Sequence record: MH791414.1 | DNA length: 64,000 bases | Direction: 5' to 3' (one strand) | In this document: in pieces, positions 16,572 through 48,407 of the stretch | Layout: every line of letters begins with the position of its first letter | Numbering within the stretch: position 1 is the first letter of the stretch | The notes under the pieces: generated by a model | The model's database searches: none | What the model saw: the letters and a program-made list of their open reading frames with translations, nothing else | What the model was told of the DNA's origin: nothing | Position numbers and translations under genes: made by a program

Positions 16572-17498
16572 TTATGCCCCGATTGATTCGATAGACTTAA
16601 TAAATACGTCGATAATAGCCGTACTTATGTTTGTAATTGTAAGAACCACCGTACTACCAATTATCGAATATTTGGCATCAAATAAGAGGTTGTCTTCTGG
16701 TTGTAATGGTTCTTTCGTCCGGATCCTAGCGTATTCGGTAGAATAAACATTTAGGTCGGCAGTGCTACTATTATTTACCATCAGTAAAGTTTCGCAAGAT
16801 TCTTGCATAGCAGCTGCACCCCGTTGAGTGACAAACATCATATGTTTAACCGCGTTATATTGGGTTTTATTAAACAATACTAGGTTACGTTCTGCACCCG
16901 GAGCAATACCGGACATAGTTGCAGAATATGAAGTTGCGTTATCTCCATATAGGGATTCGATCCGATAATTCCATTTCGAGCCAGCTGAACTAGCCTCAGT
17001 AACCCAAAATGTTATTCTGAAATATGGCTTATTCAAAACGATGCGGTTTCCAAGGGTTCCGATACTATCACCACTACCACTGGTTCTGATGATCACTTCT
17101 TTACCTGTACCGTATCCAACCGACCCATCACTATTGATAAGTTCGATACATTCCCCGGCGTGATTACTACCAACTGGTAATGTAATCGTTAGGTCACCAG
17201 CACCGTCACGAAGAACAGATACATCATGCATAGAACCATATTCAACCGGGTTCCCCGATGGCTGTTCTGCACCAGCATAGTAAGCCCTTGTATGCTTTTG
17301 GTAGTACCCAGTTGCGTGAAGGGTTTGTACCCTATTACCAAGTCCGGAAGTTTTACCAATACGATAATCCCCGAATACGTTATAGATACTGTTAAGATCT
17401 TGGTTTATCTTAACGCCGCCATCGTGTAGAGTGTCCCCGGTCCCTTCTTGCCCGCGAACGCCTGTATCAATTAGCTCTTTTGGCTTTTGTACTGACAT
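16572..17498 (-). CDS. 9: Baseplate wedge long-tail-fibre connector gp9
   Basis: QKPKELIDTG...TGDTLHDGGVKIN and HATGYYQKH match T4 gp9. Confidence 0.95.
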   Translation of the reverse strand: MSVQKPKELIDTGVRGQEGTGDTLHDGGVKINQDLNSIYNVFGDYRIGKTSGLGNRVQTLHATGYYQKHTRAYYAGAEQPSGNPVEYGSMHDVSVLRDGAGDLTITLPVGSNHAGECIELINSDGSVGYGTGKEVIIRTSGSGDSIGTLGNRIVLNKPYFRITFWVTEASSAGSKWNYRIESLYGDNATSYSATMSGIAPGAERNLVLFNKTQYNAVKHMMFVTQRGAAAMQESCETLLMVNNSSTADLNVYSTEYARIRTKEPLQPEDNLLFDAKYSIIGSTVVLTITNISTAIIDVFIKSIESIGA

Positions 17499-17532
17499 TG
17501 TTATAGATCCTTTTGTTTATAGATTACTTCAG

Positions 17533-17539
17533 TATTTAG
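17533..17539 (-). promoter_or_regulatory. Late promoter CTAAATA for gp9
   Basis: TATTTAG about 35 nt upstream of the gp9 start. Confidence 0.65.
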
Positions 17540-17558
17540 GGATTTTTTTAAAAAGGTA

Positions 17559-17586
17559 TTGCATTGCGGATTCGTTGTGCTATGAT
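17559..17586 (+). promoter_or_regulatory. Sigma70-type early promoter
   Basis: TTGCAT-N16-TATGAT with TG extended -10; divergent from the gp9 late promoter. Confidence 0.65.
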
Positions 17587-17625
17587 GACCTTGTTGAAAC
17601 GAAACACCTCTTAACCAAAAAGGAA

Positions 17626-17847
17626 ATGACTATGACTAACGTACAAATGTTCTTCGGTTCCCGCGCTACTGCTCGTCAAGCTTCCTTCGGTAAAATGACC
17701 GACAACGGTCAAGGTTCCGAAAAACGCTGGGCTCGTACAGTTTCCGTAAATACTAAAGAGGCCACTCAAACCACAATGATCCGCAAAGGCCGTCGCGGTG
17801 AACAAGTCACCACCACTGTGGTAGTGAAAAAGGCAAAGAAATGGTAA
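17626..17847 (+). CDS. Small basic hypothetical protein (73 aa)
   Basis: AAGGA SD before ATG 17626; codon usage typical of highly expressed genes. The ORF track starts it further upstream at 17431, overlapping gp9. Confidence 0.75.
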   Translation: MTMTNVQMFFGSRATARQASFGKMTDNGQGSEKRWARTVSVNTKEATQTTMIRKGRRGEQVTTTVVVKKAKKW

Positions 17848-17851
17848 AACA

Positions 17852-18502
17852 ATGAAAAAGATAGTAAGTGTATGTCTTTTATCGCTATCATTGTTCACAA
17901 TGACCCCAGCCATCGGAGCATCTTTTGATTGTTCGTTGGCTGGTACAAAAATTGAGCATATGATTTGTGAAAACGACAATATCAATAAATTAGATGAAGA
18001 ATTAAACGTTCTTTATAAAAACGCGAGATCAAATCCATCGGTTGTTTTAGAACAAAAAGAATGGATTAAGATGAGAAATGGTGTCAGTACACCAAGAGAA
18101 TTGGAAAACATGTATTTGTCAAGAGTTCAAGAACTTAGTTCGAGGGCTGTGGGAAATACAAAATTCGAAATAGTAAAGCAAAATCGAATCGTTGAGAAAA
18201 AGAAGAAAACATTAGAAGAACTGATTGTGTTCATACTTAAAAACGATGTATACCCACTCGATGGGAAATATTACAGCGTGAAAGAAAGAGCCGATACGGG
18301 GGACGATTCTTTAAATGCTTGCTTACAGGATGGGACTTTAATGTCAATTACGTTAATTCGTGATAAAATGGTAGATCTTGGTATATATAACAAATACTGG
18401 GACCAAGTAAAAACAAAATTATACATCGGTATGTATAACTCATCTGTAGAAAGTATAAAAACAGACGAAAAACAAAGAACTCTTTGCAAATTGCAATATT
18501 AA
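17852..18502 (+). CDS. Secreted LprI/DUF1311-like (lysozyme inhibitor family) protein
   Basis: Signal peptide followed by ASFDC..A.T.IE.MIC....L..LDEEL..LY, the LprI-family signature. Confidence 0.75.
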   Translation: MKKIVSVCLLSLSLFTMTPAIGASFDCSLAGTKIEHMICENDNINKLDEELNVLYKNARSNPSVVLEQKEWIKMRNGVSTPRELENMYLSRVQELSSRAVGNTKFEIVKQNRIVEKKKKTLEELIVFILKNDVYPLDGKYYSVKERADTGDDSLNACLQDGTLMSITLIRDKMVDLGIYNKYWDQVKTKLYIGMYNSSVESIKTDEKQRTLCKLQY

Positions 18503-18533
18503 AAAAGCCCACTCTTCTACGAGTGGGCTTTTT
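18501..18533. terminator. Bidirectional intrinsic terminator
   Basis: AAAAAAGCCCACTC-ttctac-GAGTGGGCTTTTT between converging genes. Confidence 0.85.
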
Positions 18534-18534
18534 G

Positions 18535-19518
18535 TTAGAATTGAAAAACTACGTTGAATTCTTCAGTCTGATCCCTAGACCTAATAACGGGTTGGCGGTT
18601 ATCCATATAGATAATGTTCCCACTATGTCGTTCTAATTGGTCTGGTGTATAAGTTAACTCAGTCGCTTTGACATCCGGGTCACTAGGTTCTGCCTTCACC
18701 AACAGTGGGTTGCAAACTAGCCCCATTTGTCTAAACCCAGTATTACCAATTTTACTTGACGCTGGGAAACTGTAACTGTCAAAATAAGCACGAAACCTAA
18801 GAGTATCACACTTTATCCGGTTCAGCAAATTATAATCATTTGGATACCAAGACAACACGTTTTGATATCCCCAGACAGAAGGGTTATCTTTAAGATCGTC
18901 TGGTGTTGGAACTACAATATATTCGTTAGAACAATCGTTAATTGCAACGTCACTTGGGATAGTATACAGGTATTCCCAAATATAACCATCCTTCATATCA
19001 ACCCCGTCAGATTTACCAATCGGGAGGATACTTTTAATGGATGGGGTCCATTGTTCCCCAATTTTCAAACACTCTTCTTTGGTGATCACTGACTCAATAG
19101 AGCAGAGACCATCGCTTGGTACATCTACGCATCGATAAACGATCCACCCAGAGCCGATTTCACTCCGGTTATAAGGTGCGGTATTCGTGACAACAATATC
19201 CCCAACATGAAACGTCTGTGGATTTGTATATCTCTGATCACCCCAGTCCCTACGAGGAACAACCGGGCGGATCATCTCTTTCTGGATCTTCACTGCCCCC
19301 AACATTCTAGCCCACACATCAGAAAATCCCTCGGTGGTATCATCTGGATATGGCGGCGCAAATTTCGGGTCTGACTCGTTGTCTGCCCAAGCATCTTTTC
19401 TTCCAAAATAGGCATAAAGCGTATTTTTTGAAACATCATCACCAATTGCATTATAAAAGTTTAAAAGGTTAGCGACCCGAAAGTCGCTGGTAACCTTAGC
19501 TCTGTAAATTACTGACAT
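18535..19518 (-). CDS. 8: Baseplate wedge gp8
   Basis: SVIYRAKVTSDFR, FAPPYP, PRRDWGD and GYIWEYLY match T4 gp8. Confidence 0.95.
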   Translation of the reverse strand: MSVIYRAKVTSDFRVANLLNFYNAIGDDVSKNTLYAYFGRKDAWADNESDPKFAPPYPDDTTEGFSDVWARMLGAVKIQKEMIRPVVPRRDWGDQRYTNPQTFHVGDIVVTNTAPYNRSEIGSGWIVYRCVDVPSDGLCSIESVITKEECLKIGEQWTPSIKSILPIGKSDGVDMKDGYIWEYLYTIPSDVAINDCSNEYIVVPTPDDLKDNPSVWGYQNVLSWYPNDYNLLNRIKCDTLRFRAYFDSYSFPASSKIGNTGFRQMGLVCNPLLVKAEPSDPDVKATELTYTPDQLERHSGNIIYMDNRQPVIRSRDQTEEFNVVFQF

Positions 19519-25404: not shown

Positions 25405-25701
25405 TCACACGACAAAAATATTAGAGGAACATTCAACAATGACCTCGCCTTCTGTACAAATATCAGCCAATTGCGCAACACGTTTTCCTTCGATAAAAAC
25501 CTTCGCACTACTAGCAATAACGAGACCTGATTTAGGACTCGGATCATCACCGGGTTTTATATGTGTTATCACCCGGTCATCTTCCCTAACCAATATTTGT
25601 TTACCATTAGCAAAAACCGTTGTGGTAGTACCAACAACCCGACTTGGTAGCCAAGGTCCGGGTCCAATTGTTTTTGCATTATTTAATACTAATCCAGCCA
25701 T
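25405..25701 (-). CDS. 5.4: PAAR-like spike tip gp5.4
   Basis: MAGL...GPGPWLPSRV...VFANG...KVFIEGKRVAQLAD...SSNIFV colinear with T4 gp5.4; start reassigned to ATG 25701. Confidence 0.85.
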   Translation of the reverse strand: MAGLVLNNAKTIGPGPWLPSRVVGTTTTVFANGKQILVREDDRVITHIKPGDDPSPKSGLVIASSAKVFIEGKRVAQLADICTEGEVIVECSSNIFVV

Positions 25702-26271: not shown

Positions 26272-26616
26272 ATGGAATCTTTTCAATTTAAAAGTGTAGA
26301 ATCGTTTATTGCTTTTAAGCATAAGAGCGTGGACAATAACAAGATCGGAGAAAAAATTGGGCTTGGTCCATTTGTTGTTACAAATTTCTTACATGGTAGA
26401 ATTTTGGGTATTCGAGATCAAGAAGAACTCGAAGAAGAATTTTTCCCTATCTTTGATGAGGATGAGGTTAGAATGTACCTCACTAAATTATCAGAAAACA
26501 AGCAGTCCAACTTAGAAGATTATAAAGTTAACGCACTTAAAAACGAATTACTGGTTATAAAAGCAAACTTAACCAAAGAGATTCACAGAATCGACACTCT
26601 ATTGGATAATATGTAA
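26272..26616 (+). CDS. Hypothetical protein (FQFKSVE motif family)
   Basis: GAGGT SD before ATG 26272; N-terminus resembles the ORFs at 55037 and 55551. Confidence 0.75.
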   Translation: MESFQFKSVESFIAFKHKSVDNNKIGEKIGLGPFVVTNFLHGRILGIRDQEELEEEFFPIFDEDEVRMYLTKLSENKQSNLEDYKVNALKNELLVIKANLTKEIHRIDTLLDNM

Positions 26617-26891
26617 TGAAACTAATTTATATTGGAAGTAATTATGGTGGTTTCAAACAAAACCAAATTCACAATTTTCGTGTTAGACGAGAACTAACTA
26701 ATTTCCTAGAAAAGAATTTCGATAAAATAGAAAATGAAGATGTTTTGATGAAAGTCGAAATGAAAGAAACTATTTATTGGGATTTCTGCCCATACGATAT
26801 GGATGTTGGAAATGGAAAAATGACTTTCGTTTGGGACCTAGACAAAGAAATCCTATCAGATTTTATACATCATCGCGCACAAGAAATTTAA
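26616..26891 (+). CDS. Hypothetical protein (91 aa)
   Basis: TAATG coupling with the upstream ORF; ends at a terminator. Confidence 0.7.
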   Translation: MKLIYIGSNYGGFKQNQIHNFRVRRELTNFLEKNFDKIENEDVLMKVEMKETIYWDFCPYDMDVGNGKMTFVWDLDKEILSDFIHHRAQEI

Positions 26892-26897
26892 AAAAAC

Positions 26898-26924
26898 AAA
26901 AGGGAACCCGAAGGTTCCCTTTTT
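26898..26924. terminator. Bidirectional intrinsic terminator
   Basis: AAAAGGGAACC-cgaa-GGTTCCCTTTTT. Confidence 0.85.
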
Positions 26925-28743
26925 AGTTAATATTCACAGTAGAACCACTAATCTCAGTTGTACCAGCAGAAGTGATAAGACTTTGTGCAGCTTGAGATTT
27001 ATAATTTCCCCCAACTGTCGATGTAAAATTCCCACCGACATTTAGATTATAATCCCCATCCACCGAATTATCACAGTTACCAGCCACTTGAGCAGTTAGG
27101 TTTCCTTCTATATTGCTATCTACGTTCCCGTTTACAGTTTGAGTAACGTTACCTTTAACTATTTGGTCCATATTTCCATGTATAGTTTCAGTAACATTTC
27201 CTTTCACAACTTGGGATAAGTTCCCGTCAACTTGTTGAGTGCAGTTACCCATAACATAAACAGTTGCATTACCTTCCACAACCGCTTGATAATCACCTTT
27301 CACGTTCAAATATTTATTGGCTAAATCTATTTCGAAATTCTCACCATATATCTTAGTTACTTGACGACCGTCACCAGACCACTCTATAAACGTCCCAGAG
27401 GGGTGTTTTCTATGGTATCTCTCAGCACCCGGAGTATCGTCGAACTCTTGAACATGCCCAGATTCAGACTCGTATACGTGGTTGTATGGGTATTGAGCCC
27501 GATACGCACTCTTTGGTTCTTCAAAAAGCAAACCATCATCGCGGGGAACTGGGGGAACTGACGGATCTTCTTCATCGTCCAAAGGAACTGGATCGGAAGT
27601 GACAGCAACCATCCTCATAAACGACGCAGTTGGAATATTAATACTGTCAGTATCCAAAGACATGGTTCTTAAAGATATGGGGGGTGTCGGTTCTTGTGGG
27701 ACCATCACACCATAAGATTCTAGGTTTCCGGTTAACACGATCCTAGAAACTCGATTTGCCCGTCCGGGGGTTTGTTTAGCCCAGAGTGAATCTAACATCC
27801 CCTGTTGGGCTTCCTTCCATCGTTCGTTGTACATATGATCAAGCGTAGTTCTAAACTTAGCTAGACCACCGGCACCCATCTGAAAGGCCATGTTCTCTAA
27901 AGCCATCTGTCTAGACCGGTTAACTTTGACATAAACCTTTCTGATGTTTTCAAATCTCATCATATCAGATCTGGTTTTTTGGATATCCTCACTAAACAGC
28001 TTTGAAACGTCCTCTGGCGATATCGTTCCACCTTTGACAGGATGACCTAGCTGTTGGGTTAGAATCGCGTCTATACGCGCTACGTCTCTTGTTTTCTCAT
28101 GAATAATCAAGTGACCAATCCCGATGGTAGGATATCCCAAAGAATCCAAATACCATACGTTTCTAACGCCTTCATCACCCTTCAGCATTTTTTCTATGGT
28201 GAAATTCGGGTCATCGTCTTCTGGGATCTCATCTAGGGGTCTGTCATCTGGTGCAACTGCAATAGAAGAGTTTTCATCTTGAGTATATACACCAAGAGGC
28301 ATACCGTCAATTGATGGGGGGGCACTCCCGTTTATACTATCACCCTTCTGACCACCACCCGCTAATATATTCACGTCATTTCCGATATATCTCGGAAATT
28401 GACCGAATGGGTCACAAAAACCTTTCAAAGTATTTGGTTGTTGAACATAGGATCCGGGGATTGTAAAAAGGATAAGACCATCTTGTTTAAATGCGTCCCT
28501 GAATATCCCACCAACCCAACTACCTTCAACTAAACCAGTCGGACTATCACCAACCCCAGATATAGATGCTGATGTAGTTGGTAGAGCCGAGTGAAACCAA
28601 AGTAATTCATCTGTTGGGATACCTAGCAAATCATTTTTTGATTTTTGGTCCGTGTGTATCCCCATTACACGGACCCTATATCTACCTTGTTTTAGAGGGT
28701 CGAATCTATCCTCAACCACCCCAAAAAACCATTCTAAATTCAT
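26923..28743 (-). CDS. 5: Baseplate hub subunit / tail lysozyme gp5
   Basis: OB-fold (GVVEDRFDPLKQGRYRVRV), lysozyme (DEG...YLDSLGYPTIGIGHL with E/D/T triad), YPYNHVYESESGH and 8-residue beta-helix repeats. Confidence 0.97.
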   Translation of the reverse strand: MNLEWFFGVVEDRFDPLKQGRYRVRVMGIHTDQKSKNDLLGIPTDELLWFHSALPTTSASISGVGDSPTGLVEGSWVGGIFRDAFKQDGLILFTIPGSYVQQPNTLKGFCDPFGQFPRYIGNDVNILAGGGQKGDSINGSAPPSIDGMPLGVYTQDENSSIAVAPDDRPLDEIPEDDDPNFTIEKMLKGDEGVRNVWYLDSLGYPTIGIGHLIIHEKTRDVARIDAILTQQLGHPVKGGTISPEDVSKLFSEDIQKTRSDMMRFENIRKVYVKVNRSRQMALENMAFQMGAGGLAKFRTTLDHMYNERWKEAQQGMLDSLWAKQTPGRANRVSRIVLTGNLESYGVMVPQEPTPPISLRTMSLDTDSINIPTASFMRMVAVTSDPVPLDDEEDPSVPPVPRDDGLLFEEPKSAYRAQYPYNHVYESESGHVQEFDDTPGAERYHRKHPSGTFIEWSGDGRQVTKIYGENFEIDLANKYLNVKGDYQAVVEGNATVYVMGNCTQQVDGNLSQVVKGNVTETIHGNMDQIVKGNVTQTVNGNVDSNIEGNLTAQVAGNCDNSVDGDYNLNVGGNFTSTVGGNYKSQAAQSLITSAGTTEISGSTVNIN

Positions 28744-29978
28744 GATACCACCTTACCCCGAATATCAGAATCAGAAATCAATTCTATATTCATAAAATAT
28801 GTTTCTCTTGTTAATACATGGTTTATGGAATTAACCAACCAATGACCAGCATCCTTAGATGTCATATCACCGTTCATATCACCAGCTATAATATTTACCA
28901 CACTACCGCTTTTAATATCGGAGTTTCCCGCGATTTGAATAAGCATACGCTTTGCATTAAGAGACACACGATTCGTTGCTCTAATACCTAATGAGTTTCC
29001 ATTAGACCCCATATTGATATACTTATACATCTGGTCTTCAGTTGTAAAAAGAACACAGGTATTTCTTTCCGGCTTAATATCCCCACCATACCAACTTTCT
29101 GGATTTAGCGTTGGATATATTTCTTTGACGGTCTGATAATCCTGATATTTATTTGTGTATAACTTTTTATCGATACTCATAGAGTGAACATCGACACCGA
29201 GACCACCTAATCTATATTGTTCTGGGATATTATATCCCTTCACACGTTGCATTTTTATAATTTTGTTATACATCGTGGTATCGTGAGTTGCTTCAAATAT
29301 TAAATCAACTACCGGGTCTTCAATAAGAAGGGAAGTCCCAGATTTAAAATTTATACCATCGATATTTTCAAATAAATAAAAGTTGCTATCGCCTTTCGCA
29401 TTAGGCTCTGACGATTGAGAAGATTGTGCCAAGTGATTTATAACAGCCAATGGTGTCATATTTGGAATAACAATATCCCGATTGTATAAAGTAGGTTCAA
29501 TTTTCATCAATTCATCTGTATAACCAATAAGCTTAAGCATATCTGAAATAATAGAATGAATAGATGTATTAGAATAACTCTTACTTACTTTCCTATACTC
29601 GTTATTATGTTCTTCCTCAGAAACAAAATGTATTCTAATATACTTTTTTGTTTGTGTCTCAGGTGAAGTTATATCTTCGTATCGTACTACTTTAAAATTT
29701 TTAGAAAACGTTGTTGCGTCTTCACCATTCAAATGAACGGACCTAAAGCTTATTTGTATCTTTTCATCACCACGAGGGTTTATCGAGTTTATGAAGTTCA
29801 TAAAATCAACAAAATCTAAAGTACCTTTGAAGAGACCTTGTGAGATCCCTTCAGTGATGCTTACAGATTTAAAAATCTCGGATAAATCAAACGCAGTTGG
29901 TTCAGAACCTTGATAAAAAGCAATACGATCAATCGTAAAGTTTTCATAAGCCGCCGTACTTCGTCTACTTATTCCCAC
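28740..29978 (-). CDS. 27: Baseplate hub gp27-like protein
   Basis: Size and pattern (GTLDF.D...GDEKIQISF; FYLFENIDGINF; GNSDIKSG) fit a gp27-type hub; lies between gp53 and gp5. Confidence 0.7.
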   Translation of the reverse strand: MGISRRSTAAYENFTIDRIAFYQGSEPTAFDLSEIFKSVSITEGISQGLFKGTLDFVDFMNFINSINPRGDEKIQISFRSVHLNGEDATTFSKNFKVVRYEDITSPETQTKKYIRIHFVSEEEHNNEYRKVSKSYSNTSIHSIISDMLKLIGYTDELMKIEPTLYNRDIVIPNMTPLAVINHLAQSSQSSEPNAKGDSNFYLFENIDGINFKSGTSLLIEDPVVDLIFEATHDTTMYNKIIKMQRVKGYNIPEQYRLGGLGVDVHSMSIDKKLYTNKYQDYQTVKEIYPTLNPESWYGGDIKPERNTCVLFTTEDQMYKYINMGSNGNSLGIRATNRVSLNAKRMLIQIAGNSDIKSGSVVNIIAGDMNGDMTSKDAGHWLVNSINHVLTRETYFMNIELISDSDIRGKVVS

Positions 29979-39156: not shown

Positions 39157-40170
39157 ATGTCTAAAATGTTCGACCAGTTGCTTGAGTCTATGAACCAAGC
39201 AATTGCCCTTAAAACTCTTGGGTTGTCTTCCAATTTTACTGAAGAAGAACTCAAAGCCGCTTATCGAAAAGCAGCAAAAGACAATCACCCAGATCGCGGT
39301 GGTAGTACAGAAAAAATGCAGTCTGTTAACTCTGCATACGAAGAACTTAAAAATTCCGGTTCTTCTGCGACTCGTGAAGCCTCTTGGGCTCAACGAAAGC
39401 AGAAACAAGAAGACGAAAAACGTGTTGTGACTAATTTTGTTACCCACATGTTTGATAAGTTTTTTGATATCAATGCTTATCTTGATTACTTCCAAAAAAT
39501 GAGTGGTAAAAAATTCACTTTTGAAAGGAAAATCAATGTTGGGACTTGGGGAACTGCGTCTGTAGATTATAAGTTTTCATCAGAAGACCGTTCTGTTTTC
39601 TTTGATCTTAATGCTATGGCTCATGTGTTTATCACAAAAGCTCTTGGTGCTGGTATTGATAAACCGGAATTGGATAAAATGGGTGTCTTTACTGAGGTCT
39701 TGATCGACCGTAAGAAAGTAAAAATGTCTCAAAGTAATTACAATCAATCAGAAACAGAAAAGTTCATGAAGGATCCGAAAATCCTTTTCCCAGAAACAAA
39801 ACTGAAAAAAGCTTTTTCGGCTGACAAGAAAGTAAAACCGCTTAAAAAAGCTGATTATGTTCTTTTTGTTAAGAAAGAACTTGAAGGCAAACACCTTGGT
39901 GGTGATGATTTTGCTGTTGACATCGGTAACGGTTCTGTGATTTACTTCTCTCGTATGACATGGATGAGAAAAGGTGTATGGAATATCAGTGGTCGAACTG
40001 GGACTAAGGAACGTTGGTCTGTCACTACTCCTTTCTACGAGACAGAAACTCCAGAAAATATGGACGTAATGAAAGAACTTGTTCAAACAATGAAATCTCA
40101 TAATTCTTCAAATGGTCAGCAGATGGAGTCTCTTGTGAAAAAAATTATGTTGAAAGCAAACAAGACTTAA
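39157..40170 (+). CDS. J-domain (DnaJ-like) protein
   Basis: ELKAAYRKAAKDNHPDRGGSTEKMQSVNSAYEEL with intact HPD; GAGGA SD before ATG 39157. Confidence 0.9.
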   Translation: MSKMFDQLLESMNQAIALKTLGLSSNFTEEELKAAYRKAAKDNHPDRGGSTEKMQSVNSAYEELKNSGSSATREASWAQRKQKQEDEKRVVTNFVTHMFDKFFDINAYLDYFQKMSGKKFTFERKINVGTWGTASVDYKFSSEDRSVFFDLNAMAHVFITKALGAGIDKPELDKMGVFTEVLIDRKKVKMSQSNYNQSETEKFMKDPKILFPETKLKKAFSADKKVKPLKKADYVLFVKKELEGKHLGGDDFAVDIGNGSVIYFSRMTWMRKGVWNISGRTGTKERWSVTTPFYETETPENMDVMKELVQTMKSHNSSNGQQMESLVKKIMLKANKT

Positions 40171-40177
40171 AATAAAA

Positions 40178-44478: not shown

Positions 44479-44718
44479 GTGAAAATGGAATATGTCGGTG
44501 ATAATAGATTGAAATCGTTTCACGTAAATTCACCGGATGAATTATTCTCATATAAGCATATTGGATTTTCGAAATGGGATCTTGAAATATTATCATCTAA
44601 GATATCAAAAATAGATGTGGTTTATTGGTCTGATACCCCACCTTGGATAAAAGAAGATAAAATATCTTGGAGTATTGACAAAGATCGTCTGGTTGATTAC
44701 ATTAATAAGCTGTTATGA
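44479..44718 (+). CDS. Hypothetical protein (79 aa)
   Basis: AAGGA SD; lies between tRNAs. Confidence 0.6.
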   Translation: MKMEYVGDNRLKSFHVNSPDELFSYKHIGFSKWDLEILSSKISKIDVVYWSDTPPWIKEDKISWSIDKDRLVDYINKLL

Positions 44719-45281: not shown

Positions 45282-45358
45282 GGGGGATTAGCTCAGTTGG
45301 AATGAGCGACTGGTTTGCAACCAGTAGGTCATCGGTTCGAGCCCGATATCCTCCACCA
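45282..45358 (+). tRNA. tRNA-Ala(TGC)
   Basis: ACTGG-TTTGCAA-CCAGT; G3:U70 identity pair. Confidence 0.93.
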
Positions 45359-45369
45359 AATAATTTCAA

Positions 45370-45444
45370 GCCTGTATGGTGTTAATGGTAACATGTCGTC
45401 CTTCCAAGTCGAAGTTCCGGGTTCGAGTCCCGATTCAGGCTCCA
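45370..45444 (+). tRNA. tRNA-Gly(TCC)
   Basis: Loop CTTCCAA; TCCA end. Confidence 0.9.
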
Positions 45445-45558
45445 AAAGAAATAAGGCATAGGGCTCTAGATTCCTAGTCAGTTTCTCACCCCTAGTTGCT
45501 GCATATACCCCGACTTTTCCGTGACTGGTGTAAAAAGGTTTGGGTAAACGTATTAAAT

Positions 45559-45637
45559 CCGCGTGTAGGCTAGTCAGGTCGAGGTCGTCTGGTTTGGGAC
45601 CAGAAAGTCGGGTGTTCGAATCACCCCACGCGGACCA
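45559..45637 (+). tRNA. tRNA-Pro(TGG)
   Basis: TCTGG-TTTGGGA-CCAGA; ACCA end. Confidence 0.92.
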
Positions 45638-45639
45638 AA

Positions 45640-46285
45640 TTCTATAGAGTGAGTAACCGGTTGCAAACGGACTCATAAAGTCGTCAAACCTTAGTACCCT
45701 CTCCCGAAAATATCGGTGATGCGACTAAAATGAAGGCGCAAATTGAGAATTTATTTTCACAAAGCTATTGCTTCTGGATTTAAATTCTCAGATACTCTTA
45801 ATTTGAGCGGGTTACTGGTCATCCCCTCGTAAAACAATATCAAAATCTTAGTGGTTCGGTCGCGACATATGAACCAAGAGTATCTGAGAATTTAAGTTTA
45901 AAAGAACTTCCTTCGGGAATGGGGTACATAGACGGGGCGCACCCCATTGTACCGACGCTTTAAGTAGCCCGTGCGAGAGACTAAAAAGCTGACCCTACCC
46001 TCTCCCAGTAATGGTGATGGAGCTTCCTTTCCTGTAATAAGGTTCCAGTCCGTGACGGGTAAAAGGTTACATAAGGAGAATTGCTTGTGAATGACCACTG
46101 ATTCAAGCCAACACATAAGCGCGTCTATCATGACGATAAATAGGCTTAGATTCCCGTAAGGGCCTAAGCGTAAAAGTAACGAGCAAGACCGTCTTACAGG
46201 CGTAGCCCATTGGGGTGATGATGTTTGTATGTTTGGGCTCGGGTAGCCAATGCTATTAAGTCTGGTGATGGTGCGACCAGATCTT
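45640..46285 (+). ncRNA. Putative large structured ncRNA tract
   Basis: No credible ORF; many hairpins with UUCG and GNRA loops; perfect 20-bp inverted repeat. Confidence 0.55.
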
Positions 46286-46746: not shown

Positions 46747-46834
46747 GGAGAAGTGGATGAGCGGTTTAAATCGCTCCCCTGCTAAGGGAGTAAACCGAAA
46801 GGTTTCGAGAGTTCGAATCTCTCTTTCTCCGCCA
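46747..46834 (+). tRNA. tRNA-Ser(GCT)
   Basis: CTCCC-CTGCTAA-GGGAG; long variable arm; GCCA end. Confidence 0.93.
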
Positions 46835-46840
46835 AATATA

Positions 46841-46917
46841 GAGGATGTAGTAGAGTTGGTTAATATTCCAGCCTGTCACGTTGGAGATCGCGGGTTCGAG
46901 CCCCGTCATCCTCGCCA
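46841..46917 (+). tRNA. tRNA-Asp(GTC)
   Basis: CCAGC-CTGTCAC-GTTGG; GCCA end. Confidence 0.92.
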
Positions 46918-46973
46918 AATTAGGCCCATCTCAGCCTTTAATGAGACGTAGAAACTAACCAAAAGGAAATGAT

Positions 46974-47496: not shown

Positions 47497-47645
47497 CTAT
47501 CCCTAAATATATTTGTAGAGATAATATCGAATAGACTCACCCCAAAATATGACAGTGAAGCATTCTTGATTATCTTTTTATAATAATAAAAACGTGTATA
47601 CCATTTGGGCTAGGGAACTAGCCCTTTATTGATTTGGAGATATTT

Positions 47646-47855
47646 ATGGCTAAAAGTATTCACGAAAAGTCTCATGCTAGAGAAGGTCGTGGTGGCGCTA
47701 ATACCGGTAATGAAAAATGGTATAAATCGCCGTTGTGGGATAAAGTTGAAGCAAAACAAATCCCTCTGGATGCAAAACCGGATGCTCTTTTTAAAGAGAA
47801 AGAAGGTGAAGATATTAAAGAAAAGCAAAAGCGGGCCTTTATGTTTGCTTATTAA
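47646..47855 (+). CDS. Hypothetical protein (69 aa)
   Basis: GGAGA SD before ATG 47646. Confidence 0.65.
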   Translation: MAKSIHEKSHAREGRGGANTGNEKWYKSPLWDKVEAKQIPLDAKPDALFKEKEGEDIKEKQKRAFMFAY

Positions 47856-47870
47856 AAAGGAAAATAAGAT

Positions 47871-48407
47871 ATGTTAGTATCGAAATTAGATCTTTGTAGA
47901 GATCTTTATGACCAAGTTTGTAAAATGGCATTGTGTATTCATTCTGATATAAAGGACGACCAAAATAGATTGGTCTTCCCCCCAGTTGAATATCAACAAG
48001 AATTTGCGTGTTTGTCTATTGATTTAGGACGACAGACTGGAAAAACAACTTTTATCGTTGAGTCACTTTTAAAAAATCCAAATTCCATTGCTATAGTAAA
48101 TAAAGAGATTTGGGTTAGAGAATATGAACATATAGAACCGAGTTTGAAGGGTCGTGTATTCAGTCCATCTGGATTTATTAATAAGTTTTATTCTCGCGGA
48201 TCTACTGAACATGTTGTTTTTGGTAGGAATATACCAAAACATGACATTGTGTTTTTAGATGAGCCATATTTCTTTTGTACACAAGGTCAAATGAATTACA
48301 CAAATCGGGAGCACTGTACGTATCCGTCCAAAATGTCCCTAAAATCTCTAATTTTATATGCATCATACCAGTTTGGTGCAGTTAACGTAATGGTTGGAAT
48401 GAAATGA
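47871..48407 (+). CDS. Small P-loop NTPase (LGRQTGKTT ... FLDEP)
   Basis: Walker A and B; resembles a small T4 accessory P-loop protein (MobD.1-like, from recall). Confidence 0.65.
   Translation: MLVSKLDLCRDLYDQVCKMALCIHSDIKDDQNRLVFPPVEYQQEFACLSIDLGRQTGKTTFIVESLLKNPNSIAIVNKEIWVREYEHIEPSLKGRVFSPSGFINKFYSRGSTEHVVFGRNIPKHDIVFLDEPYFFCTQGQMNYTNREHCTYPSKMSLKSLILYASYQFGAVNVMVGMK

Follow-up and report, generated by a model that had tools for sequence, protein, structure and literature searches.

An antisense early-type cassette of two sources, carrying an LprI-like gene, between gp8 and gp9 of Aeromonas phage Aswh_1

Why should a strictly lytic, T4-like phage carry, inside a minus-strand block of baseplate genes, a small transcription unit that points the other way, and what might the secreted protein encoded there do for it? 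The question is raised by positions 17559 to 18533 of a 64,000-nucleotide (nt) stretch of sequence record MH791414.1, referred to here as the window, whose positions are used throughout unless the record is named (the record coordinate being the window coordinate plus 124000). Over 17400-18700 the sequence matches Aeromonas phage Aswh_1 (MH791414.1) at 100% and phage ZPAH1 at 98.4% identity; both phages belong to Ishigurovirus (Straboviridae, Emmerichvirinae). A reading made from the sequence alone had described the locus as a self-contained cassette encoding a secreted lysozyme inhibitor, comparable in its role to Spackle of phage T4. Here, we describe a cassette that, on alignment, is a chimera of two sources, namely a promoter and small gene shared with a paralogous module of the same genome and a gene for a 216-residue signal-peptide protein that replaces a family member lost from another site, and we tentatively favour a protective role for that protein in the envelope of the infected cell. 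Of what is new here, the firmest part is evolutionary and consists of the exact slot, the chimeric make-up of the cassette, the gene conversion and the displacement of a family member by a xenologue.

The slot is defined by comparison with the related phages 65, CC2, avDM6 and Aeh1, in which the gap between gp8 and gp9 measures 73-83 base pairs (bp) and holds a symmetric terminator hairpin together with the motif CTAAATAC. In Aswh_1 the same gap measures 1036 bp, a difference that marks a genuine insertion rather than a chance open reading frame (ORF). The late promoter and the place of the hairpin are still present there, ~946 bp of additional sequence (17555-18500; Table 1) separating them, and this insert is seen only in Aswh_1 and ZPAH1, where the two copies are 98.4% identical. 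Read along the plus strand, it consists of a sigma70-like promoter, a small basic gene and the gene for the 216-residue protein, and the symmetric hairpin follows. All of the elements that the sequence-only reading had assigned to a self-contained antisense unit with an early-type promoter were found where it had placed them, as the junction alignments and the alignments of paralogue promoters confirm, and the sign of both GC and AT skew reverses over 17800-18500, in keeping with plus-strand coding inside a minus-strand block.

The elements on either side of the insert belong to the resident genes. The hairpin, which had been called a bidirectional terminator, deserves that name, having perfect 13-nt arms (18502-18514 and 18521-18533) and, whichever strand is folded, a free energy near -22 kcal/mol (z-scores -5.5 and -6.6 for the two strands), and the stop codon of the 216-residue gene extends into its A-tract. 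An equivalent symmetric hairpin follows gp8 at the same place in the relatives, so the position of the terminator is ancestral and not cassette-borne, and by this comparison the cassette uses the resident gp8 terminator position in the opposite direction. No second copy of the hairpin sequence was found among the loci compared, and the only Rfam matches in the cassette, all of them on the hairpin, were sub-threshold and were rejected. At the other end, CTAAATAC occurs nine times in the window against 2.7 expected (at 2450, 7218, 12089, 17532 and 26236 on the minus strand, 31634, 39130 and 48837 on the plus strand, and 63979 on the minus strand), and in seven of the nine copies it lies ~20-40 nt upstream of an annotated start, the genes concerned being mostly virion or other late-type genes. 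It is therefore the apparent late-promoter element of the phage group to which Aswh_1 belongs, and as the cassette has the terminal hairpin of gp8 on one side and the gp9 late promoter on the other, late expression of the baseplate genes should be left undisturbed.

The upstream part of the cassette has counterparts elsewhere. Its promoter and those of the paralogues ASwh1_97, avDM6_00349 and CC2_gp069 line up position by position, and one paralogue promoter (TTGACG, 17 nt, GATACT, with TG), which sits behind a stem-loop, was called by a consensus scan; from these alignments it is plausible that the cassette promoter is real and early-acting. The small gene that follows belongs to the family phrog_8445, which is present in three copies per genome in Aeromonas T4-likes and has relatives in Erwinia and Salmonella phages. 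It had first been given as a 73-residue basic frame; the plus-strand frame is indeed present, while its likely start, with an AGGA 7 nt upstream and the same start in GenBank, gives 71 residues. Searches of its product against Pfam, NCBIfam, PADLOC and PDB returned no match, and its closest relative, at 76% protein identity, is ASwh1_97 of the same genome (record 39954-40175, minus strand), which lies in an early region alongside gp31, cd and pseT. The G+C content of the small gene (48%) is among the three highest in the window; two other small genes that are not homologous to it, at 45329..45676 (minus strand) and 46757..46951 (plus strand), also have ~48% against a region average of 38%.

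The likeness to ASwh1_97 is unevenly spread. Besides the 126-nt identical tract, there is a further identical run of 24 nt at 17782-17805, and both runs are flanked by diverged sequence. Over the 1301 nt in which Aswh_1 and ZPAH1 were compared there are 21 differences, 13 of which fall in the small gene and a single one, synonymous, in the 216-residue gene. We read the two identical tracts and this concentration of differences as ongoing gene conversion among paralogues, and the promoter, leader and small gene together as a paralogue module of ASwh1_97, so that the promoter-leader-gene module would serve as a recombination handle of the kind proposed for promoter-early stem-loop (PeSL) cassettes. 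The genes downstream of the small-gene paralogues are mutually unrelated, which means that, by conservation, the two genes of the cassette form no functional pair.

The second gene is ASwh1_240 in the GenBank record of Aswh_1 and ZPAH1_orf00288 in that of ZPAH1, and in both it is annotated from 17900 (200 residues), 16 codons late, so that the signal peptide is hidden. Since its homologues align from residue 1 and all have a signal peptide, 17852 is the better start. The signal peptide revealed in this way has two N-terminal positive charges, a hydrophobic core (KD10 2.4) and an AxA-type end right before SFDC, while the mature part lacks both a lipobox and a transmembrane anchor. A Sec-type signal architecture and exactly four cysteines at conserved positions of the mature part are shared by all 13 homologues, which upholds the earlier description of an ORF with a signal peptide and the ASFDC..A.T.IE.MIC motif, and the protein is probably, from these features, Sec-exported, disulfide-bonded and composed of two domains. 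The ORF is intact and the protein identical in Aswh_1 and ZPAH1. A foreign origin by composition was considered and rejected, the G+C content of the gene (33%) being within the range of the phage's small accessory genes.

The first of the two domains falls within the DUF1311/LprI superfamily, as had been proposed. In a direct search with the Pfam model PF07007 (LprI), the protein itself scores below the cut-off (20.5 bits against 22; E 6.5e-4; residues 31-77 on profile positions 9-70 of 106), so that the simplest form of the suggested HMM (hidden Markov model) comparison falls short; the relationship stands on the full-length homologues, nine of ten of which pass the cut-off with 22.4-37.2 bits, and on an hhalign comparison of the phage N-domain with the canonical single-domain, four-cysteine DUF1311 family (99.9% probability, E 1.2e-33, 82 columns). 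Twelve residues of the N-domain are invariant (D26, C27, A30, E35, I38, C39, D48, Y55, Q68, W71, R75 and L84). The protein shares with PF07007 members such as the N-terminal domain of Mycobacterium tuberculosis LprI, Escherichia coli YecT, Salmonella ScwA, Etsi4 and Psi15 the signature (S/G)FDC...E..IC...LD...Y...Q..W right after the signal peptide, an all-helical domain, a periplasmic setting and homology over the full length of the domain. It differs from them in its sub-threshold score, in having neither the third and fourth cysteines nor an MliC domain, in its phage-type C-domain and in that no effector gene adjoins it. Searches of the cassette proteins against NCBIfam and PADLOC gave no meaningful match, and a Pfam hit to Cap15_CD_rec (E 0.036), not shared by the homologues, was dismissed as a chance match.

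The second domain is more particular to phages. Its conserved residues are Cys157, Asn196 and Cys212, and the idea that it might be a second DUF1311 copy was rejected on an hhalign probability of 0.1%. An AlphaFold2 model built with a 39-sequence alignment has a mean predicted local distance difference test (pLDDT) score of 84.5, with a helical N-domain above 90 and values below 50 at residues 1-22; it places helices at 33-58, 62-75, 81-131, 152-176, 179-204 and 206-215 and a hairpin at 133-142 (a model from the single sequence, with a pLDDT of 49, was not used). Compared by Foldseek with viral models, it recovers only its own family, and sequence searches of PDB with phmmer and with a profile gave nothing, or one chance match to a ribosomal protein. 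A tblastn search with the C-domain only finds just Aswh_1 itself and ZPAH1, the domain being too divergent for tblastn alone, and in all it is confined to about ten protein clusters, from T4-like phages, another Aeromonas phage, ev099-type lambdoid prophages, SSU5-like phage-plasmids and one island inserted in comM.

Where the 216-residue gene belongs in the history of the genome becomes apparent at a second locus. In avDM6, CC2, the 65 lineage and one metagenomic relative, a homologue of 212-239 residues lies between rnlB and inh, in the ancestral order rnlB, hypothetical gene, LprI-like gene, hypothetical gene, inh. At this site in Aswh_1 and ZPAH1 the LprI-like gene is absent and its two hypothetical neighbours adjoin, overlapping by 4 nt; by tblastn, the copy in the gp8-gp9 gap is the only LprI-like one in Aswh_1. 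Every Emmerichvirinae genome examined has one family member, loss at the old site coinciding with gain at the new one. The protein is only 23-30% identical to those at the ancestral locus of the relatives, and the gene is, by position and divergence, a xenologue at a new site that replaces the ancestral-locus member of the family. That one site lost the gene and another acquired a xenologue suggests a function that is retained and a sequence that may vary freely. No relative closer than ZPAH1 was present among 1.84 billion representative proteins or in IMG/VR, and no donor with more than ~30% full-length identity was found. In the record of phage 65 the ancestral-locus homologue is annotated as two ORFs (65p072 and 65p073) with one break; it is unbroken, a single ORF of 220 residues, in 65.2 and avDM6.

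Family members are found in ~125 phage records. The two-domain family, phrog_4675, ranges over Aeromonas, Klebsiella and other T4-like phages, lambdoid prophages in ~2% of complete E. coli genomes (ev099-type copies in 124 of 5426) and SSU5-like phage-plasmids. In RB49, Marfa and another T4-like phage its members lie on the early-gene strand, and in lambdoid prophages they lie near int/xis, with a strong terminator in the ev099 type. The island copy (locus L023, 4575..5258) belongs to an island that splits a comM-like (Mg-chelatase/ChlI) gene, and it adjoins an EcoRV-type restriction-modification pair and two serine recombinases. Settings of this kind, namely prophage int/xis regions, phage-plasmids and restriction-modification islands, are typical places of protective accessory genes. 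The label LprI-like has already been applied automatically to relatives by UniProt and PGAP; the novelty therefore lies in a phage-specific two-domain variant and its genomic behaviour, and not in a new kind of system.

As a unit, the cassette most resembles the PeSL cassettes of T4-type phages (Arbiol et al. 2010; Comeau et al. 2014; PMC2839356, PMC4122927), with which it has in common an accessory gene under its own early-type promoter, a stem-loop terminator and an intergenic insertion that spares its neighbours; the paralogue ASwh1_97 is likewise preceded by a stem-loop and a promoter. Two hallmarks of PeSLs are present, a putative early sigma70-like promoter with an A/T-rich upstream tract and a bounding stem-loop terminator. 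It departs from them in lying antisense inside a conserved late virion module, in that the recombining homology (the 126-nt tract) reaches into the first half of a small gene that is itself conserved, and in carrying a promoter at one end only, the other end reusing the resident gp8 terminator position. A second comparison is with the morons of lambdoid prophages, which are also promoter-gene-terminator units between resident genes, the ev099-type member near xis/int with its strong terminator being a good example; the unit of Aswh_1 differs in belonging to a strictly lytic T4-like phage and in being likely expressed early in infection, not from a prophage. On these comparisons, a mobile early-gene unit of the PeSL type is the best explanation of the cassette.

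What, then, might the unit do? In the mechanism that we favour, host sigma70 RNA polymerase would transcribe the cassette early, the 216-residue frame would be translated by coupling to the small gene, and the product would lose its signal peptide, by cleavage after Ala23, on export. Once in the periplasm it would bind and neutralise a peptidoglycan-cleaving enzyme, or otherwise guard the envelope of the infected cell, resulting in an immunity or a superinfection-exclusion-type function. The comparisons above show the anatomy, the insertion, the homologies, the displacement and the gene conversion; the early timing, export, disulfides and function in this scheme are inferred. The scheme draws on what is known of the superfamily, in which DUF1311 proteins are actual or predicted periplasmic immunity proteins against cell-wall-targeting effectors of type VI secretion systems (T6SS) (PMC9796082, PMC8867033); Etsi4, for instance, rescues the toxicity of Etse4 (PMC12981562), and Pantoea has a pair consisting of Pse15, with a pesticin domain, and Psi15, with an LprI domain (bioRxiv 10.64898/2026.08.01.741415). 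In the DUF1311-and-phage literature examined, no function is described for a phage-encoded member. A role directed at peptidoglycan hydrolases is plausible by this analogy, and the reading as a whole, in which the protein antagonises a peptidoglycan-cleaving enzyme in the periplasm or guards the envelope in some similar way, is one that we prefer while placing it somewhat short of an even chance.

Several observations weigh against it or, in particular, against an inhibition of lysozyme. A passage of PMC7933661 attributes the inhibitory activity of M. tuberculosis LprI to its MliC domain, and this domain (PF09864) has no Pfam match in the 216-residue protein or in 10 homologues; on that account, the statement in the sequence-only reading that the motif typifies lysozyme inhibitors went too far. 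For ScwA, the one protein with PF07007 only whose mutant has been assayed against lysozyme, a deletion leaves lysozyme sensitivity unchanged, and the overproduced protein raises the levels of MltD and causes lysis (PMC7933661). The canonical third and fourth cysteines, a C-x4-C pair, are replaced in all two-domain phage homologues, and the N-domain may be a generic binding module, since in other proteins it is joined to ankyrin repeats or SH3_3 or repeated in tandem (2309 matches, almost all covering residues 1-100 only). The C-domain has neither a Pfam nor a PDB match, which leaves half of the protein without a known relative, and a Foldseek search of PDB gave no match with E below 1, for a full-length two-domain query that may lower sensitivity, so that no named lysozyme inhibitor, Spackle-like protein or known immunity protein was recovered. 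As regards the unit itself, no convincing direct repeats or target duplication flank the insert and there is no second PeSL. Its early expression would depend on a single promoter site with three of six matches in the -35 hexamer, which is why it is missing from the consensus scan list; the sigma70-type promoter that had been proposed is present, and the paralogue promoters align with it, with this reservation about its -35 element.

The more specific proposal of the sequence-only reading, that the protein attaches to the lysozyme domain of gp5 when phages of its own kind superinfect and so prevents them from penetrating the cell wall, has an obvious precedent in Spackle (gp61.3), the periplasmic inhibitor of the gp5 tail lysozyme of T4. 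Both are small, helical phage proteins with a signal for Sec export, and the protein of Aswh_1 is predicted to be early and periplasmic, as Spackle is (PMC7677548); gp5 of Aswh_1 (26923..28743) has a phage-lysozyme domain, a search of Aeromonas phages detected no homologue of Spackle, so that an analogue could fill its place in the Aeromonas T4-likes, and in Pantoea an LprI-domain protein is paired with a pesticin-domain effector. That any such analogue would be non-homologous, as had been stated, is confirmed by a BLASTP comparison with Marfa Spackle that aligns the signal peptide only (E 0.31), the protein of Aswh_1 being twice the size and having two domains, and nothing Spackle-like came out of the Foldseek search of PDB. 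Nor is there co-variation with gp5. The gp5 lysozyme domain is 80-85% identical among Aswh_1, avDM6 and CC2, against 23-30% for their LprI-like proteins, so that the LprI-like gene was exchanged for a xenologue with no matching change in gp5. The Klebsiella phage Marfa, moreover, has Spackle and an LprI-like gene together, and the family occurs in lambdoid prophages and phage-plasmids that have no gp5 of this type, and we regard gp5 as an improbable target. Much the same standing, still improbable, is given to a regulator after the manner of ScwA, a periplasmic PF07007 protein whose effect on MltD was noted above, which would modulate a lytic transglycosylase and so remodel the wall during infection. 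The enzyme could be one of the host or the phage's own ASwh1_119 (record 47630-48139, minus strand), a secreted SLT-domain protein of an early region with a clear signal peptide, homologous to T4 vs.1 (phrog_600, function unknown). The vs.1 family, however, is found in ~2080 phage records, including that of T4, which has no LprI-like gene, as compared with ~125 for the LprI-like family, so there is no specific co-occurrence of the two, and ScwA differs in architecture, with a C-terminal LprI domain in a total of 275 residues (PMC7933661).

A broader alternative is an envelope function apart from peptidoglycan hydrolases, such as receptor masking, a block to DNA entry at the inner membrane or antiholin-like timing of lysis, with DUF1311 as a generic binding or scaffold module. 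The joining of the N-domain to many unrelated C-terminal regions, ankyrin and SH3_3 among them, would suit such a module, the phage-specific C-domain may carry the specificity, and fast divergence with xenologous replacement fits any arms-race function. Many proteins that mask receptors or block injection have, however, a transmembrane anchor or a lipobox, which this one lacks, and the link to lysis genes is slight, the RB49 homologue lying ~2.3 kb from the holin gene t on the opposite strand with eight genes between and no such link being seen elsewhere. We consider this alternative unlikely, if more deserving of attention than either of the two before it. Least of all do we expect a passenger, a gene of slight or no present function that hitch-hikes with the recombinogenic promoter and small-gene module: that module is recombinationally active and the homologue of phage 65 is annotated in two pieces, but the intact ORF, the single synonymous difference between Aswh_1 and ZPAH1, the conservation of the signature residues and of all four cysteines, and the one-for-one replacement across the subfamily genomes examined make it very improbable. 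Returning to wall protection, one may extend it to the whole of phrog_4675 and suppose a widespread, unrecognised class of phage periplasmic immunity or superinfection-exclusion proteins that neutralise incoming muramidases, whether tail lysozymes or T6SS cell-wall effectors, and that are needed in the Spackle-less Aeromonas T4-likes strongly enough for loss at one locus to be compensated by capture of a xenologue at another; in this generality the proposal is a speculative one, with the chances well on the side of its being wrong.

The coordinates of the cassette and of the genes beside it are collected in Table 1.

Table 1. The gp8-gp9 cassette, its parts and its neighbours, in window positions
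Feature	Position	Strand	Basis or remark
Inserted cassette, ~946 bp	17555..18500	+	Junction alignments with 65, CC2, avDM6 and Aeh1
Putative sigma70-like promoter: TTGCAT (17559-17564), 16-nt spacer, extended -10 TGcTATGAT (17578-17586), A/T-rich tract just upstream	17559..17586	+	Read from sequence
Tract of 126 nt identical to ASwh1_97 (5' untranslated region, Shine-Dalgarno sequence, first half of small gene)	17613..17738	+	Pairwise alignment
Small basic protein gene, 71 residues (73 if started at 17626), phrog_8445	17632..17847	+	PHROG 5e-26
Gene for 216-residue secreted two-domain precursor (predicted), phrog_4675	17852..18502	+	Start 4 nt after small-gene stop
Signal peptide, residues 1-23, predicted cleavage AIGA/SF	17852..17920	+	Sec-type features
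N-domain, residues 24-105, DUF1311/LprI-type helical, Cys27 and Cys39	17921..18166	+	Pfam, hhalign
C-domain, residues ~112-216: end of long helix, beta-hairpin, three helices	18185..18499	+	AlphaFold2 model, homologue alignment
Bidirectional intrinsic terminator, shared with gp8	18502..18533	both	8-bp G+C stem extended by A5/T5
Apparent late-promoter motif CTAAATAC of gp9, kept beside the insertion	17532..17539	-	Invariant at the same place in 65, CC2, avDM6 and Aeh1
gp9, baseplate wedge/tail-fibre connector	16572..17498	-	Pfam T4_gp9_10_N 1e-25, phrog_967; GenBank ASwh1_238
gp8, baseplate wedge subunit	18535..19518	-	Pfam Phage-Gp8 6.5e-127

Beyond gp8, the minus strand continues with gp7, gp6 and gp5, each recognised by Pfam and PHROG matches, and a 98-residue PAAR-motif protein of the gp5.4 spike-tip type is encoded at 25405..25701 (minus strand). 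The baseplate module contains a second antisense gene pair, at 26272..26616 and 26616..26891 (both plus strand), between gp5 and a gp5.1-like gene; the pair is kept in CC2 (336/337) and avDM6 (205/206), and neither a signal peptide nor a Pfam match was found in it. Two further stretches, 28740-29975 (minus strand) and 44482-44718 (plus strand), are entered in the GenBank record, which is marked UNVERIFIED, as misc_feature 'similar to hypothetical protein' and not as coding sequences, the depositors having called no intact genes there.

Whatever the function of its product, the locus shows clearly, in a natural setting, how a gene of a T4-like genome can be displaced by a xenologue at a new site, and it also exemplifies a promoter-plus-leader-gene module serving as a recombination handle within a conserved block of virion genes. 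For both GenBank records, the start-codon annotation that had hidden the signal peptide is corrected. If wall protection proves to be the role of the 216-residue protein, the Aeromonas phages would meet the problem for which T4 uses Spackle by a second route, with a non-homologous protein, and superinfection exclusion by phages would be linked to DUF1311-based immunity against T6SS muramidases.

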